Position numbers and translations under genes: made by a program. From positions 11,966,001 to 12,030,000 of the forward strand of contig OZ004608.1 of assembly GCA_963924565.1 (NCBI GenBank): a stretch of DNA of 64,000 nucleotides, read 5' to 3'. This DNA is from Ascidiella aspersa (lineage: Eukaryota). The notes beneath the pieces were generated by a model. It was given only the letters and a program-made list of their open reading frames with translations. It made no database searches and was not told the origin of the DNA. Position 1 is the stretch's first letter. Every line of letters starts with the position of its first letter. Positions 44,057-52,638 of this stretch are shown here, piece by piece.

Positions 44057-47000
44057 ATGGCATCACACTCTGGAACAATGGTAGATGTGCCAGTTAGTTC
44101 AAGTGAGCACATTCCTATACCACCAACTAATGATACCAAGATTAAAATTGGATCTTTTGGAATAAAAACTCCCCCCAACAGTCCCTGGATGCCCACAAGT
44201 CCATGGGGGCTAAAAGACAATGGAGCCGTGCCCCATAACAACACCTCGTTTGAAGAAGTAATGAGTGAACAGTTAGCAAACCAACTGCACTTGGCTGAAA
44301 ATCGGATTGTATCTCAAGAAAACCTACAAGAAACTGGTTGGAAATTAAATATTTTTCTTGTGTTAGCTATGAAAGTTCCGCATTTAAAATAGAATTTAGC
44401 TCATATTCGTCATATTTAAATTAAATTTATATTCTTTCTACTAATTGTAATATCTGTTTACCCTAAATTATTTATATATAAACCCAGTATTAGGAATATA
44501 TCATACATTTTATTCCGATACAATAACTGATATTTTGAAAACAAAGTATCGCGATCTGATCCGATACCAAATGACTTTTTTTCAATTAGGCCAAAACTTA
44601 CTTTAGCGTTAAGAAGTTTAGTTATATCCAGTTGCTAACTTAAATTCTTTTAAAGTTTAAATTTGACATTATAATTGCTAAATTGTATTGAAAATAATGC
44701 CTGAAATTCTTGTAATAATTTGGTATCAAATTGGTGCCTATACTATCACTTGGCATCGATTATCGGATCCGAGCCAAAAATGTCTAACTAGATTATATAT
44801 ATAGATAGTTCATAATATTATAGATGTTTTAGGTGAAAATTTGGATGATGAACTTGTGTTACCTGTTATTGATGGCACCGACACCTCAAATGACTTTATA
44901 ATTGCCCAAATGCTCCAGTCCAAAATGGACAAGGAATACAATGATCATTTGACAAAACAGGAAAAGCAAGTGAACCAAAACTCCAAGGTGTGTAGTTGTT
45001 ACAACTCTGCTATTGACTAATTATAACTTGCATTCAAATAAAATTGAGGCTGGATACCAAAACATGTTATATGTTAGATCTAACGAATTGATAAATTAAC
45101 CCGTTTTAGGAAATTACCCACAGGTTAAAAACCACCGTCTTAAATAGTTAAATCTAGTATTCCACAAATATCAATATTTTATCTGCAGATTAGCACTGGG
45201 TTCACTGTTGTAAATCATCCAGAGAATTACAAAAAAATTGTACACTTATGTAAAACTTTTGTTTGGCAAGTAGTTTGGGTGTTTTTGAATAATACAAAGG
45301 CTGAAACATATGTTTCTGAGACAGCAATGTCAATTAATGGGCTGTTTTGCATTTATAACAACTAAATAACTTTTTCTGCAGGTCAAACTCTTATTTTCAA
45401 AATATCGTACAGATGAAACTTTTCAGTCTGAGGATGAAGAAGATAATGATAAGAAAAATGAAGATCACTATGCAAATTTTTCTAATGAAGATCCAAGTTC
45501 GAATATGCTGCAATTTAAAAATGAAAAAGGTTTGTAAAAAGGAAATCGATTTTCAGTCACTGCCAACCTCAATCTTTTCAATCTTTGGTAAATTAAAATA
45601 GGTTCTTCTGGCAAAACTTTTATTAAAACCACTGATTTTTGATTACCTATTCAAGTCAACTTTTTTAGGGGCAACTAAAGATCGACCATCTTGAAAAAAG
45701 TTCTACCAAACGAACCATTTTTGATTTATACAATGCCCGACAGCAACAGTATATTTATGCTAGTTTTCAAGCTTAAGATAGAAGGCTATTGCTTTAATTT
45801 TTTAAAGGGTATGTTAAGTTTGGAAAAGAACTAGTAACTAAACACGACTTGGAAATCAACGGTAGAAAGAATACAGCCAAGTTGGAGGATTCCTTTCCTG
45901 TGGGATTTAACACGGGAGATGCAAGAGGAATGGATTTACAACTGTCAAACAAAATATATAACAGCTTGAAGAAGTATGCCTACTCTGAAGACAGAAGGTA
46001 AACATTTTTTGGCCTTCTTGTTTAAGGTAAAACATATCTAAAATAAAAGTAAAATTTTATTTTATTTTTATTTAGGTAAAACAATATTAAAATTATCTAG
46101 ATTTCACAGAAATGTGCCCTACAGAGATTCTAAAATATTGTAAATCAGTGTAGTATATATATTATATTAAGGGAATATGAACATTACATGAAATATACCA
46201 TTATAAATAAACATGTTTATGCAATGATTTCCAGGGGTCAAAGGTTACATGAAGGAAAGGAGCATTACACAGCGGAGCATGCTGTCGATGAAAAGACCCG
46301 TTTGATTCTTCATCGTCTGGTTGATCGGGGCATCATCTCGTCCGTTAATGGGGTTATTAGTATTGGCAAAGAGGCAGTTGTTATACATGCTGATGGTGGT
46401 GACATCGTCGCAACAGAAGAAACCAACAAAACACCACAGAATAAACATGACCTTGATGTCTTAAATGTGCCAAAGGAGTGTGTCATAAAGGTCATTAGTG
46501 CAACACGAAACATACTATTTTTGAAAATTTTCGTTGGCTAATTAACTCCCATAAAAAAACAGCATATAGGGCCAGGGTTGAACAGAAAAAACTTTCTTAT
46601 CCAGGTGAAGAATTGCATCATAATCATAATAACATTAAAAGTAGATAATGTTTTACTGGCTGTGTTGAAAATAAACAGGGTGTAATTATTGCATTGTAGG
46701 TTTTTAAGACTACTCTAAATGAATTCAAAGCCAGAGATAAGTACATCAAGGATGACTACAGGTTCAAAGATCGCTTTAAGAAACTGAATCCAAGAAAAAT
46801 TATTCACATGTGGGCCGAAAAGGAGATGCACAACCTGAACCGGATGACAGAAGCCGGAATCGCTTGTCCCGAGGTGGTTTTATTGCGTAAACATCTTCTT
46901 GTCATGTCATTTATTGGACATGACCAGCAGCCAGCGCCAAAACTGAAGGATGCAATTTTGTCAAGCTCACAGAAAAAGTCTGCGTTCGAACAGGTTGGTA

Positions 47001-47851
47001 AAAAGTGTGCATCTACCTTTTGTTGATATCCGTTACTGTTTGATTCCAACTTTTACTGTGTTTGCAAATTGATAAGTCAAACAACAATTTTAAAAACGCC
47101 AATACTGCCAGAGGCTGTAATCCCACCTTTATTTTAATTAATTAAAACAACTATCAGCTTAACAACTCTATTCTGCAGGTATTATCTATGATGAAAACAC
47201 TGTACCACGACTGTAAACTTGTTCATGCTGATCTCAGCGAATTTAATCTTCTTTGGCATGAACATCGGGTAATGGCATACTTACATAAATAACAATAAGA
47301 TTATTTCTATTAACATTTAAGTTATCGTATCCTATTGTTGAAGATATAATAAGGGAAAATTGAGAAGTCATTGATTTGTAGTTCTTCAAATAAACAGTAA
47401 CCACACACACTTATAAAAACTCGTTTTTAATATTTTCAACCTAAGGTAAATATCTTTGCACTGAAATTAAAATATAACTTTATATCCAGGTTTGGATGAT
47501 AGATGTAAGCCAGTCAGTTGAACCTTCCCACCCCAATGCTTTGGAGTTCCTTCTAAGGGATTGCCATAACATATCAAAGTTTTTTACTAACTTAGGCTGT
47601 AAAGATGTTGCCAGTCCTATGGAGTTATTTAATGAAGTATCTGGGTAAGGCTTAGTAAATATGTGATATATTATTGTTTTTTACAAAAACAAAATTACCT
47701 GTATGCTTATTTCCACAGATTGGACATACCAATTACAGACGAAACTGCCTTTCGGTCTGCAATCAGCGTTTTACAAAATTCTGCGGAGGAACATGCTCAC
47801 CAAGGAAGAAGAAAAGCAAGCCAGATTTTGGACCAAGCGGAAAGCGATTAG
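44057..47851 (+). CDS. RIOK3: Serine/threonine-protein kinase RIO3, 9 exons, ~569 aa
   Basis: Exons: 44057-44336, 44824-44987, 45382-45529, 45808-45997, 46235-46490, 46700-46993, 47179-47268, 47490-47644, 47719-47851 (1710 nt). RIO3-type N-terminus (SPW..SFEEVMSEQLANQL, DFIIAQMLQ, VTKHD..GRKN) and RIO kinase motifs ISIGKEAVVIHA, KVFKTTLNEFKARDKYIKDDYRF, WAEKEMHNL, LVHADLSEFNLLW, IDVSQSVE. Confidence 0.95.
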
Positions 47852-48899
47852 CATTAATAGCAATTTGAGTGGTACTTGTTTACATTTTTTTTAAATGCGC
47901 AAAGTTTATGAAACAGAGTCTTACTGCATTTTTACATCGCAAAACGCAATACAAAAGTTTTAGCAACAGCTTGGTATTCTTCAACTGCTAGTGTTGTGAC
48001 CGGAGGATCAATGGTCCTAAGGTGGTGTAGAGCAGTGCTTCTTAAACTCTTTTAGTTTTGTTCACCCTAGCATATATCTCCAAATTTCATTTACCCTGGT
48101 CTTATGATATGATAAAACTATCTTGTTTATCATTTTTATATATGGCCGTATTTGTTGTTTATATTTCACTGAACAGGTTGAACTCCCGGAATATCCACTC
48201 TGCTCGCAAGCTATTATCCATTTCCCATGGTTCACCCTTATTCCACTCCTTTTGGTTGGTTCACCCCTGCAAAAAAAATTATTCACCCTGGGGTGAACCA
48301 TTCACCTCATTAAAATACGTGGTAGAGCATTACAAACCTAGTTAGCCCCGCAGTAGCATGTATGAATGTGCTATGTATGAATACTGAATTCATCAATATT
48401 TAAAAATTTGTAATCAAAACAAAGGAATCCTTTATGTAAATCAAAAACAAGTTACTAGGCTTTAAAGTTTAAAACTTTGTACATAACTAAAAAGTTGTGC
48501 TGGGTCGAAGACCGCAAACTTTGAGAATTAACTACAATGCTATAATTTCCAATTAAATTGATATAGGTTTTAAAATAAGTACAACCATTATTGATTACTA
48601 TGAAATATAAAAAGTTAAAATAATTGTTAGATCAGGGCATAGTTTCTTCACCTTTTTTCTCCCATAACATTTGACCAATTAGTTGTTGTGCAATAAAGAG
48701 ACTTACTAAAACTCGTTTAATGCTAAAATTGAATAACATTGCACAATTTGAGATGTATGTAATATGACAGTCTTGTTGGGGTAAATTTAATTTTAGGAAA
48801 TCACATATCTGGTCTTATTTGATAGGAAACACTTAGCCAGATCTATAACCTAAAGTAAAGTCCACAACAAAAGCAACTCAGATTTTAGAGCACTGTATA

Positions 48900-48905
48900 T
48901 TTATT
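48900..48905 (-). terminator. Candidate polyadenylation signal for WDR4 (and probably for FAM204A)
   Basis: AATAAA on the minus strand ~30 nt after the WDR4 stop codon. Confidence 0.55.
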
Positions 48906-48936
48906 ACCGCTAAACAAATCACGCAGGTATAAGAGA

Positions 48937-50171
48937 TCAGCCCTCCAGTTTAATTTTTTTGGTGGTTGTGCCCTTACTAAAAACTTTTCCTTCCTCTTTT
49001 TTCTTATAGAAGGCAAGGTATTTTTTGCCCCCCATTTGAGGTTTATACAGTGGAATGTATGATTTTATGACAAAATCTTCACAGGGCATTTCTTTAAGAA
49101 TGTCACTTAGACTTTCAATTCGTAATTCCTTTTGGCTTTCAGGAGAACATTCAAAGCAGGTTACGCAGGGCAGTGATTGATTTTTGTATAATGTATAAAT
49201 TGTGGGTAATATTCCCTCATTTTTCAAAAAATCAAAATCCATTAATTCACTATCTTTAGGAAGTTGTAAAGCATACATGAAATGCAATTGATTGTCTTTT
49301 AGTTTATACAAATTTGTGTGAGACTGCTTTAAACAACCAATTGCAACCATATTCATCGATTTTGCCACAATAGATGGGATTTGTTTTTCTGTTGGTTCTT
49401 CTGAGTTTTCAGCTTTCCCTGATTGCTGGTCAATTTTTATAATTTGTAAAGATGTCCCGGTGTTAATCTCCCATAACCTTGCAGTTCCATCTCCAGACAA
49501 GGACAGCAGCAACTTATCAGAGAGAAGACACAGACGGGAAACAAAATCTGTGTGGCCAAAACAAAACAACTCAATGATAAACGGATTTTGGCGATTGGAA
49601 ACGCGTATCTTTTCATCTCTGTCAGCGGTAATAATGTACTGATCAGTGCAGACAACATCCAGCAACATTGATACATGCCCAAGAATTGCCCCCTCATCTT
49701 CACTGGTGTCCTCACTATTAGCAACTTCAACACCAGAACCTAAAAATATGTTTAAATGATTAGAGATATTATGTGGTTTACTTTTACACACTGAGGGTAA
49801 ACAATAATTCTTTTGATACCTTGCAAGTTAAAGGAATACAGGTCTCCAGATTTGTCCGCCACCAATATTTCTTTTTCATCAGTGGAAAATGAAAGTGATG
49901 TAGATCTTCTGCTTACTTCAATTATTTTATGTTCCTCAAAACCAGAGTCTATATCCTTAACTTTCCAAATTACAACAGTTTTGTCAGAGTAGAGTGCAGC
50001 AAAATGAGAAAAACTTGGCGAAAACAAGGCATAGTCCAGGCGTTCTTCCTCAGATTTACTTTTGTACTCATGGATATAGCTGAACTTGTTGCTTGTGCCC
50101 TTGGCAATCACTTGAATACCCTTGCGATTCCCAAGCACAACAAAATGAGGTGATATCCGAATGATGGCCAT
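48937..50171 (-). CDS. WDR4: tRNA (guanine-N7)-methyltransferase non-catalytic WD40 subunit WDR4/Trm82, 2 exons, 384 aa
   Basis: Exons 50171-49820 and 49739-48937, separated by an 80-nt GT-AG phase-1 intron. Diagnostic motifs LVADKSGDLYSF, LGHVSMLLDV, IITADRDEKIRVS, FCFGHTDFVS, LLSLSGDGTARLW. N-terminal length is consistent with ATG 50171 as the start. Confidence 0.93.
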
Positions 50172-50172
50172 T

Positions 50173-51349
50173 TTACATGTTACTCTTGGTCTCCCACTTT
50201 TTCTTGCTTTCAAATCTAAAAGAATAAAAATGATTTACAAAACAATATTGCACTTAAGTTTTAGTGACTTGAATCTGAAGGTTAAACTTTTAAAATTATT
50301 ATGCAAAACAATAAATGTGTAAAATAAGAAGATATCTCCTCGCCCTTACACGTAAATGACCACAATGGCTTCAAATGGATCAAATATTCTTTAGACTTTC
50401 CTGTCTTAATCAGAGTCAGTCATTTGAGAAAATATGAATAAGAGAAATATCTTTCACCACAAAATAGGGCATCATCCGTCTCTTAATTCAAATGATTCAT
50501 TCAAATTACAACTTATAAATGACTAAATTTGATTAGGACAGGAAATTCTAAAGAATTTTGGAATATGTAACTGGTTATATTTGTTTTAAAATCCAGCCCC
50601 AGTACAACATACTTCATAAAGTTTAAACAACTTACGTCCAAGAAAGCTTCTTTCTTTTTCTGTTGATTTTCTTTTGTTCCTTTGCTTCCTTGCGTTTATT
50701 ATACTTTTGGACTTCTGCAACTTTTTCTGCTTGTTCAGTTAAATCGTGTTGGCAGAGGTTAGAGGTTATTGAAACAGCCTTTTCAACGTCTCCCTTTTTT
50801 AATGCTTCCTTTAGTTTTCTTTCTTCCTTAAATTCCAATAAAACTACAATCTTGAAAAATTATATTAAACAAAAACATTTAAATATATAATATACCAATA
50901 TTTTGGAAATCCGAACATCAACTTTTTGAGATAATTTTCCTTGGTTGTTTGATGTCTTATATTGCTTTCTTGTGCTAAAATTAAATTTTAAATGGTAAGG
51001 TTGCCCATCAAACCCTACTGCCATTTGATTGTGCATTTTTTACCTTTGAACTGAAGTTTCTGATTTATTTAAGTTGTCTTTGGAGCTGGGAAGTCTTGCC
51101 TTTTGGTTTGAAGTTAGATCTAAATTTCTTTCTGCATCAATTTTCTGTAAAGTAGGTAAGTGCATCTTCCTTTTGGTTTATTGTGTGATAAAAAAAGCAT
51201 TTTTAAAACACAATTAATTGCCAATAAAATACCCTTACCTCAAGCACAGAAGATAACAATATTTTCGAATCATTTACGGATTTGCCAGTTTCTTCTTCAC
51301 TGCTATCAGATGTTGAATCAAACTCCTCGTTTAAGAGACCTTTAAACAT
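50173..51349 (-). CDS. FAM204A: Protein FAM204A (C10orf84) homolog, 5 exons, ~182 aa
   Basis: Exons 51349-51239, 51144-51044, 50974-50896, 50850-50636, 50215-50173 (549 nt). The N-terminus MFKGLLNEEFDSTSDSSEEE and the spliced C-terminus ALKKGDVEKAVSITSNL...RKRKKLSWTFESKKKWETKSNM* match the FAM204A pattern as recalled ([20 protein letters not shown]). Boundaries of the 45-nt third intron are less certain. Confidence 0.88.
50386..50556. repeat. Inverted repeat / MITE-like insert in the last FAM204A intron
   Basis: ATTCTTTAGACTTTCCTGTCTTAATCA is reverse-complementary (25/27) to TGATTAGGACAGGAAATTCTAAAGAAT, with inner arms AGTCATTT / AAATGACT. Confidence 0.75.
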
Positions 51350-52638
51350 TCATTTGACAACCAAGAATCTTGAAAAGAACAGTTTATAATTTTGTAATTA
51401 CGAGTATGACTACTTCAACAATACTCATCAGCAAACGTAATGCATTTTACTTTAACGTTGAAAGTTGGCCAATGTGTTGTGCTTGGTTCGTTACGCATGA
51501 TTTACCACCGTGGTGCGAAGGGATGATTATTATTTTTTTTGTCGAATATTAGGAATAAGTATAATAAAAACTGAATTGATGGACCCCCAGGCCCAACAAA
51601 AAATAGGCCTACTGCGACCTTTGTAATAAAACACTGTAAAAGTTCGCGAGATACTTTTATTGTCTAAAAAGTTTAAGTATATAGCGAGTTTGTTTCGAAT
51701 AAAAAATAAGCATGTCGTGACTTATAACAAAGAGATAATAATCTATTTGCTTATAAGTAGGGCGAATATTTTTTGACAAAAAAAATGGGAAACTTTGACC
51801 TAAATAATTAAAATTTTGACAAATTTTGACCTGAAAATAATTTATTTTGACAAAATTTTGACCAATACGGTTAAAATTACTTTGAACTTATATCAAAATC
51901 AATTTTTATTTTCAAAGGGAATTTTTTCAGCGCCTCGTAGTATTGTCACATTTCTATCCACAGCATGGTCGGATGCTGCCCGCCAATGTAACCAACCAAC
52001 CCTTCTCTTTTACAAACTGGCAGCGGGCCAATGTAAAAATTTCTCCCTTTGGGCTAAACTCGTTTATACTTCTGGTTCTGGCATGTTTGAGCTTTGACTG
52101 AATCTTTTCAGCCTACACAGGCATCGTACATTCCCTACAATCCACAACTATAAAATTGAGGTTTTTCTATTGGTAGCCTATATTTGAACGATTTTTCGCT
52201 TTGCACAAGTCTATTCCACGTTTTTTAAATAGCAGTCATGTAACATGGAAAATTTATCGGCCCTATTTAAATTACAGCATAAACTAAAAGTTTTTTAATA
52301 GTAATATACCTTTTCAATGTGATATGATAATATATATCTCCATATAGAGATCAGAATACATTTAGTCCTATATTTAATAGCACATTCGCGCGAGAAGGTG
52401 ACTGGTAATAACAGGCCTTAATCCATTCACAATGTATTTGGTATTTTTATTGAAATTACTCAAAACCCGTGTATTGTGTTCCAAGGCGTTTTAAGTTACA
52501 TTGTGACGTCGCATTTGAATGACTACAAAAAAGCTGTGTCTGGTTAGTGTTCGGAAGCATCTTAATTTTAACCAAACAAATATGGTACCAAATATGGTAC
52601 GCATGTATATTCTGAAACTTGTAAGAATGGCATTAAAC

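Follow-up and report, generated by a model that had tools for sequence, protein, structure and literature searches.

We report that FAM204A and WDR4, two genes on the minus strand of a 64,000-nucleotide (nt) stretch of the genome of the ascidian Ascidiella aspersa (contig OZ004608.1, positions 11,966,001 to 12,030,000; hereafter the window, to which all coordinates refer), are expressed as a mature, fully spliced and polyadenylated dicistronic mRNA, and that this is the dominant form of their transcript. The stop codon of FAM204A (50175-50173) and the initiator ATG of WDR4 (50171-50169) are separated by a single A (50172), and the FAM204A-WDR4 transcript is a real dicistronic mRNA that represents an extreme variant of the tunicate operon. 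WDR4 probably needs an unusual mode of translation. The best explanation for the locus, in which we place about even confidence, would be one transcription unit giving a dicistronic mRNA from which WDR4 is made mainly by leaky scanning.

The stop-start junction

The exon shared by the two genes (49820-50215, minus strand) reads FESKKKWETKSNM, then TAA, A and ATG. Directly after ttttAG, of which the AG (50217-50216) is the acceptor, it opens with A TTT GAA AGC, proceeds through AAG AAA AAG, TGG GAG and ACC AAG AGT, and gives AAC ATG TAA A ATG GCC ATC. As delineated by the sequence, a cis-splice joint and flat RNA coverage, it carries the 13 last FAM204A codons with their TAA (50215-50173), the spacer and WDR4 codons 1-117. 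The core of the junction, AUG UAA A AUG (50169-50178), consists of the terminal FAM204A Met, the stop, one base and a WDR4 initiator in strong context (aaaATGg). Since exon 4 of FAM204A ends with AAG CTT TCT TGG AC before the gt of its donor, and the shared exon starts with A, the junction codon is ACA; the FAM204A protein ends with KRKKLSWTFESKKKWETKSNM. The interval from the FAM204A stop to the WDR4 ATG contains no AG, and that from the same stop to 48905 no AATAAA, the sole ATTAAA (48954) lying within the WDR4 coding sequence. A signal scan placed the first AATAAA past either stop codon at 48900-48905 on the minus strand, where RNA coverage ends. An earlier note on this DNA had put stop and start one nucleotide apart in a shared exon, with no space for untranslated regions (UTRs) between the open reading frames (ORFs) and with the first AATAAA past the stop lying after WDR4. 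The minus-strand sequence, the RNA joints and the signal scan bore out this description, to which should be added that AATAAA is also present in earlier FAM204A exons, at 51069 and 50700.

It is hardly conceivable that this geometry is an artefact of an assembly deletion, a wrong FAM204A terminal exon or a wrong WDR4 start. Two DNA runs gave continuous unspliced contigs over 48300-50341 without insertion or deletion, the same junction was found in RNA reads of an independent study having fixed single-nucleotide polymorphisms (SNPs) relative to the reference, and the locus region holds no N stretches. The donor of exon 4 joins 50215 only, the exon that follows encodes the family-wide C-terminus ending in NM, and the N-terminus of WDR4 aligns from Met1. 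Moreover, the same geometry recurs in a tunicate relative (L004, see below). The three possibilities had all been named beforehand as ways in which the finding could fall, and each of them failed on these data. We found no support for an artefact, although automated callers do get such loci wrong, as with the 119-aa call in Ciona and the GTG start in L003.

A dominant dicistronic mRNA

Transcription was assessed with one stranded RNA-seq run (X5) from the same species but from another study than the DNA runs, mapped on 48300-51900; about 6% of the run was read, at a depth of 12-18x. Fixed SNPs relative to the reference mark X5 as an independent individual. The sense signal was found on the minus strand only, and RNA joints confirmed every intron. 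Corrected for intron content, exon depth was about 9-12 at the 5' end, 20-29 in FAM204A exons 2-3, 16-18 in exon 4, 12-15 over WDR4 exon 1 and 10-15 and then 30 over WDR4 exon 2, with coverage ending near 48905 and a depth of 0.5 beyond it; in the introns it was 0. There was neither a coverage step nor any intron signal at the stop/start junction, and no coverage drop or cluster of read ends at or after the FAM204A stop (depth 18 at 50196, 12-15 onward). Nor was the upstream mRNA polyadenylated at a downstream acceptor, as is characteristic of Ciona operons.

The joint from 50636 to 50215 was covered by 16 reads with 14 start positions at a local depth of about 18, showing the acceptor to be used in cis, and essentially all reads at this exon boundary were cis-spliced to FAM204A exon 4. 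Given the one-base distance from stop to start, any joint read that extends 45 nt into the exon links a FAM204A splice to the WDR4 ATG. A Logan contig from a spliced RNA run (X3) likewise joined 50827-50636 to 50215-49818 and further to 49737-48907. The expectation that FAM204A mRNAs carry WDR4 coding sequence was thus confirmed by the equal depth, the 16 junction reads and the spliced RNA contig reaching to about 48907. A second mRNA with the FAM204A terminal exon reused as 5' UTR had also been suggested; such a species has no support among the reads listed, while a minor form of up to about 25% is compatible with the depth. Among the loose read ends listed for X5, at its low depth, none was leader-like or poly(A)-like. 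An internal promoter in FAM204A intron 4 was considered as well and rejected, sense coverage there being zero.

Structure and identity of the two genes

FAM204A comprises five coding exons (111 + 101 + 79 + 191 + 43 = 525 nt, 174 aa), whose frame closes across four RNA-confirmed introns on the minus strand. Exon 1 (51239-51487) contains the 5' leader and the first 37 codons, with RNA coverage and the X3 contig reaching to about 51487, and its initiator ATG (51349-51347) has a weak context (tgaATGt). Exon 2 (51044-51144) is bounded by the joints 51144 to 51239 (13 reads) and 50973/4 to 51044 (23 reads) and agrees with the frame, as does exon 3 (50896-50974), defined by RNA joints. Exon 4 (50636-50826, encoding KKGDVEKA through KRKKLSW) is supported by the joint 50825 to 50895 (9 reads) and by its donor to 50215 (16 reads). 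A minor alternative exon 4 acceptor at 50850, seen in 4 reads (joint 50850 to 50896) compared with 9 for the main one, adds 24 nt in frame (50827-50850), corresponding to eight codons (IVVLLEFK). The RNA 5' end lies at approximately 51420-51487, and the leader contains up to three upstream ATGs, at 51445, 51428 and 51353, the last one overlapping the initiator as ATGAATG.

Both genes were searched exon by exon, whereas full-length FAM204A searches made use of the intronless orthologue at the tunicate locus L005. Exon 4 shows 53% identity to Phallusia FAM204A, and a profile built from tunicate orthologues retrieved 220 proteins, including a turtle 'protein FAM204A' and a Phallusia 'Protein FAM204A'. 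Nearly all family members end with the motif L-x-W-x-F-E-x-K-x-R/K-W-E-x-K-[SG]-N-M, to which vertebrates add GYM, and the protein of the window has this C-terminal motif together with the basic KRKK run of the family. The scan of single exons gave no Pfam family for FAM204A. Its identity as initially proposed is thus upheld by the family profile and the named members. At 50196, in the TGG codon 50196-50194, 4 of 18 RNA reads had a plus-strand A>G change (U>C in the mRNA), turning the family-invariant Trp of KKWETK into Arg. DNA contigs of other individuals lack this variant, which is not of the A-to-I editing type on the minus strand; the RNA donor was probably heterozygous at this site. High-copy repeats lie at 50236-50477, within FAM204A intron 4, and at 51688-51900, upstream of the gene; plus-strand transcripts of the former read out into other copies, and for the latter the summed DNA word depth in Logan contigs reached up to about 117,000.

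WDR4, a tRNA-methylation gene whose product is the partner of the tRNA m7G46 methyltransferase, has two coding exons (50171-49820 and 49739-48937) and encodes 384 aa. Exon 2 (48937-49739, minus strand) holds 266 codons plus TGA (48939-48937) and is joined through 49737 to 49818 (9 reads). Solved human WDR4 chains (8h0n, 8d58 and 7u20) matched exon 2 at E of about 6e-23 and exon 1 at about 1e-6, and the best database relatives were tunicate WDR4 proteins, with Phallusia at 44% followed by Clavelina and Ciona; the original assignment of this gene was correct. The N-terminus can be aligned from Met1 with WDR4 of Phallusia, Ciona and Clavelina, so that the native initiator is that at 50171. The 308.6-Mb assembly contains a single copy of WDR4 and no second one. 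Pfam scans of its single exons gave only generic WD40 and propeller matches below the cut-off, and an Rfam scan of the window gave nothing. Convergent with WDR4, on the plus strand at 46188-47900, we observed a RIO1-domain kinase gene (PF01163, E = 5e-17, one exon). As a RIO-kinase neighbour is also present in Ciona (L001) and Clavelina (L002), the synteny of all three genes is conserved.

Conservation of the gene pair in tunicates

The FAM204A-WDR4 pair was found in the same order and on the same strand at every tunicate locus or transcript contig compared, in nine species (a spacer set that excludes Phallusia), with spliced contigs containing both ORFs in four relatives (L003, L007, L014 and L015). 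The spacer between stop and ATG is 1 nt in the window and in L004, where ACATGTAAAATGG is identical, 2 nt in L005/L006 (TAA TA ATG) and 11 nt in L015, none of these having an AG. It is 14 nt in L003 with an AG 1 nt before the ATG, 19 nt in L007 and 22 nt in L014 with an AG 3 nt before it, 26 nt in Ciona with an AG directly at it (0 nt) and 34 nt in Clavelina with an AG 3 nt before it. As to conservation of the adjacency, which the earlier note had suggested checking, the pair itself is kept in all nine species and the 1-nt spacing is found also in L004; the other spacers range over 2-34 nt. None of the nine spacers is a multiple of three, which by chance alone would occur with a probability of about 0.03-0.04, and stop readthrough would thus never fuse both proteins in frame.

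In a WDR4 tree the window was sister to Phallusia (97/97) within a clade that also holds Ciona, Clavelina and two further groups (95/95). L004, on a long branch, and the pair L005 plus L015 fell outside the clade of the window. Given this placement of L004, the 1-nt junction is either ancestral or has arisen more than once. The phase-2 intron preceding the terminal FAM204A mini-exon is common to the window, Ciona, Clavelina and L004, which shows that the shared exon is old. A tblastn search with Ciona FAM204A exons gave no usable matches.

Some observations on the orthologous loci may be noted. The automated call of Ciona FAM204A (L001, 4518-5645) has 119 aa, whereas the real protein has 175 aa and ends with WETKSNM, and WDR4 of L003 was called from a GTG (661) overlapping the FAM204A stop; in practical terms, gene callers mis-model FAM204A-WDR4 loci. 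In an apparently non-tunicate Logan contig (L016, 324-1603, from SRR13076520) an adenylate kinase gene follows 243 nt after FAM204A, possibly a further case in which FAM204A has an operon-like partner.

Trans-splicing as a possible alternative source of WDR4

The AG found 0-3 nt before the ATG in spacers of at least 14 nt is likely a trans-splice acceptor, judging from its position; by a rough estimate an AG so near an ATG has a chance probability of about 0.2 per lineage. No leader remnants were seen in the dicistronic contigs of the relatives. Trans-splicing is available to Ascidiella aspersa, as evident from leader arrays in its genome: the Ciona spliced leader followed by GT gave 884 genome matches with 0-2 mismatches, compared with 55 for a reversed control, and hundreds of exact copies of the 16-nt leader plus GT occur in 584-bp tandem arrays, the leader sequence having been checked against PMC1488885. 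Such arrays were located at about 5.21-5.45 Mb of G000:C3 (L012 and L013) on both strands, with scattered copies on other contigs.

The locus could accordingly be a classical operon taken to its extreme, in which the dicistronic RNA would serve as FAM204A mRNA with WDR4 as its 3' UTR, while the WDR4 protein would come from a minor spliced-leader mRNA, made either at acceptor 50216 in competition with cis-splicing or at the conserved AG within the codons AAG-AGT (50185/50183). We hold this to be rather unlikely. It agrees with the abundance of exact leader-plus-GT copies in the arrays and with the AG just before the WDR4 ATG in five of the five relatives with spacers of at least 14 nt. In Ciona operons, furthermore, intercistronic DNA is typically absent, the poly(A) site of the upstream gene directly adjoins the acceptor of the downstream one, and AATAAA is usually missing upstream (PMC1488885). 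Dicistronic cDNAs occur there but are rare, and a given transcript may give rise to just one mRNA of the pair (PMC1488885, PMC2760879, PMC7986045). RNA-seq captures spliced-leader 5' ends poorly, leader-bearing reads making up only about 0.2% in Ciona (PMC7986045), and this rarity, combined with the low depth of our RNA data, makes a minor leader-capped WDR4 mRNA a serious rival. It is opposed by the absence of an AG between stop and start here and in three other species. Trans-splicing favours acceptors without an upstream donor (PMC1488885), whereas acceptor 50216 has one and is cis-spliced in 16 of 16 crossing reads; the internal AGs are preceded by purine-rich sequence without a pyrimidine tract. 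There was no rise in coverage past any candidate acceptor and no leader-like end among those listed. An mRNA produced in this way would also bear an AUG-UAA start-stop right before the WDR4 AUG, and the clade-wide depletion of AUGs in FAM204A, presented next, would be left unexplained.

Start codon usage and the route to WDR4

All ten tunicate FAM204A proteins lacked an internal Met, compared with 17 of 117 other family members, the mean in these others being 2.8. Out-of-frame ATGs numbered one, two and one in three full FAM204A coding sequences of relatives, where codon-order shuffles expect 5-9 (P = 0.001-0.015), and three in the window. The density of ATGs was 0.17-0.57 per 100 nt in FAM204A as compared with 0.85-2.8 in the adjacent WDR4 coding sequences, a difference of 5-10 times, and the latter showed no ATG depletion. 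The sole control resembling a non-tunicate, L016, had seven ATGs, mostly in adequate context.

The contexts of these codons pointed in the same direction. Every FAM204A initiator examined had a pyrimidine at -3 and T at +4, and 14 of 15 ATGs in the FAM204A regions had weak contexts, compared with 45% of 152 WDR4-internal ATGs (Fisher p = 2.5e-4). Besides the initiators this count included 11 ATGs (ten internal and one in the L014 leader), of which ten were weak, and all three internal FAM204A ATGs of the window were weak. The WDR4 ATG, on the other hand, always had A at -3, with G at +4 where the spacer was at most 11 nt. A weak upstream initiator combined with a strong downstream one was found in the window (tgaATGt versus aaaATGg), L003, L005, L014 and Clavelina. 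In the mature RNA of the window eight ATGs precede that of WDR4, with a purine at -3 in two only, at 51445 in the leader and at 50178 in the terminal Met codon. An AUG-poor upstream ORF with weak contexts, followed by a strong WDR4 start, is, as read from the sequence, the signature of leaky scanning.

In the mechanism that we propose, FAM204A and WDR4 would form one transcription unit conserved across tunicates, with WDR4 translated from the dicistronic mRNA itself. The main route would be leaky scanning, by which 40S subunits pass the weak FAM204A initiator and the few weak AUGs to start at the strong WDR4 AUG. Ribosomes terminating at the UAA, or starting at the terminal AUG-UAA, would be 1-7 nt from the WDR4 AUG, and local reinitiation may add to the yield. 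Spacers of 1-2 nt may keep the WDR4 AUG within reach of subunits found at the unavoidable AUG-UAA, an idea that follows what is established about initiation codons lying close together. For relatives with longer spacers, spliced-leader resolution is probably possible as well, through the AG 0-3 nt ahead of the ATG. That WDR4 is translated from the dicistronic RNA, mainly through leaky scanning and possibly helped by reinitiation, appears to us somewhat more probable than the opposite.

Several observations weigh against this mechanism. The normal course in tunicate operons is resolution by trans-splicing (PMC1488885, PMC2760879), the genome is rich in exact spliced-leader gene copies (given as more than 800), and a minor trans-spliced WDR4 mRNA at no more than about a quarter of the transcripts could supply most of the protein. 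The ATG count of the window is by itself not significant (5 observed, 6.8 expected, P = 0.26), and the ATG statistics as a whole are uncorrected for shared ancestry. Synonymous shuffles give only weak depletion in the relatives, which places the effect in the protein sequence, and it could reflect protein composition. The terminal FAM204A AUG with its A at -3 would intercept some of the scanning subunits, and as many as three upstream AUGs lie in the leader.

Pure termination-reinitiation, as in caliciviruses and influenza B, would instead involve full translation of FAM204A, termination at the UAA and restart by a fraction of the 40S subunits one base further on. We find it improbable as the sole route. 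The dicistronic mRNA is dominant, as this route would need, and the distance between stop and start is 1 nt in the window and L004, 2 nt in L005 and at most 34 nt in the nine species; a start codon within a few nt of the stop, as typifies a termination upstream ribosomal binding site, is present as UAA A AUG. In addition, all species have, 16 nt upstream of the stop, the pentamer UGGGA, the core of viral motif 1, a motif that base-pairs with helix 26 of 18S rRNA. This pentamer (50196-50192 in the window) was set aside as evidence for a viral-type signal, since it is imposed by a Trp-Glu pair that is near-universal in FAM204A, including that of vertebrates not known to have WDR4 downstream. Its spacing also differs from that in viruses, in which motif 1 is found close to the 5' edge of an element of 45-87 nt (PMC3035654). 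No motif 2/2* stem was found, and the shared exon, folded alone, had no significant RNA structure (minimum free energy -19 kcal/mol as compared with a shuffle mean of -19.9 kcal/mol, z = 0.32). Reinitiation after an ORF of 174 codons is normally inefficient, and it predicts neither AUG depletion nor weak upstream contexts. Taken together, the codon usage and context data suggest that leaky scanning is favoured at least as much as reinitiation.

A further-reaching reading is that tunicates have retained an mRNA that is polycistronic in translation and predates their major lineages, that WDR4 is made only from it and that the shrinkage of the spacer to 1-2 nt was an adaptation neutralising the unavoidable terminal AUG-UAA of FAM204A. 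In that case ribosomes would leak past an AUG-purged ORF, restart one base past its stop, or both. We regard this combination as possible, with a probability clearly short of even.

Implications and comparison with known systems

Tunicate operons and dicistronic eukaryotic mRNAs are already known, and the operon context of tunicates makes the present locus less exotic. What is new, with regard to the literature searched, is the combination of abutting coding sequences without a UTR, a dominant unresolved RNA, graded spacers and a leaky-scanning signature. On dicistronic translation in tunicates we found only operon papers, and WDR4 and FAM204A did not occur in the supplement of a Ciona trans-splicing paper. 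Tunicate operons are thought to rely on trans-splicing that gives each downstream cistron its own capped mRNA, for which there is no room here, and the upstream ORF seems moulded so that ribosomes can pass. If the proposed mechanism is correct, the locus would represent a chordate example of polycistronic translation that is natural and conserved. FAM204A, whose function is unknown, would then be expressed in a fixed ratio to a tRNA-modification subunit, hinting at a functional link. The nine spacers of 1-34 nt, with or without an acceptor AG, would constitute a natural series between trans-splicing and translational coupling.

Viral reinitiation, as for calicivirus VP2 and influenza B BM2 (PMC3035654, PMC2793014), and its cellular counterpart (PMC3923131) resemble the window in having adjacent stop and start codons and an upstream UGGGA on a dicistronic RNA. 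The window differs in that its UGGGA is explained by protein conservation and has another spacing, with no motif 2 stem or significant structure.

Closer in kind are the Ciona-type operons (PMC1488885, PMC2760879), which share with our locus the tunicate host, the same leader in the genome, abutting and co-transcribed genes on the same strand, an upstream gene without an AATAAA of its own and the existence of dicistronic cDNAs. The Ciona orthologue of FAM204A-WDR4, having a 26-nt spacer and an AG directly before the ATG, fits the classical operon model. The mRNAs of those operons abut but keep their own UTRs, whereas in the window it is the coding sequences that abut, at 1 nt, and the dicistronic RNA is dominant rather than a rare precursor, with no trans-spliced form seen. 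As there is no acceptor past the stop, and polyadenylation at an acceptor within the coding sequence would remove the FAM204A stop, the window cannot fit the classical model.

Finally, the locus may be compared with green-algal leaky-scanning mRNAs (PMC11291117) and many viral mRNAs. It differs from these in having a long (174 codons) and conserved upstream ORF, an in-frame AUG with A at -3 that is located 7 nt before the downstream AUG, and an animal host with trans-splicing, and in that the mechanism is here read from sequence. In all of these cases, however, one capped mRNA holds two ORFs, with a weak upstream initiator and few, weak upstream AUGs being followed by a strong downstream initiator.

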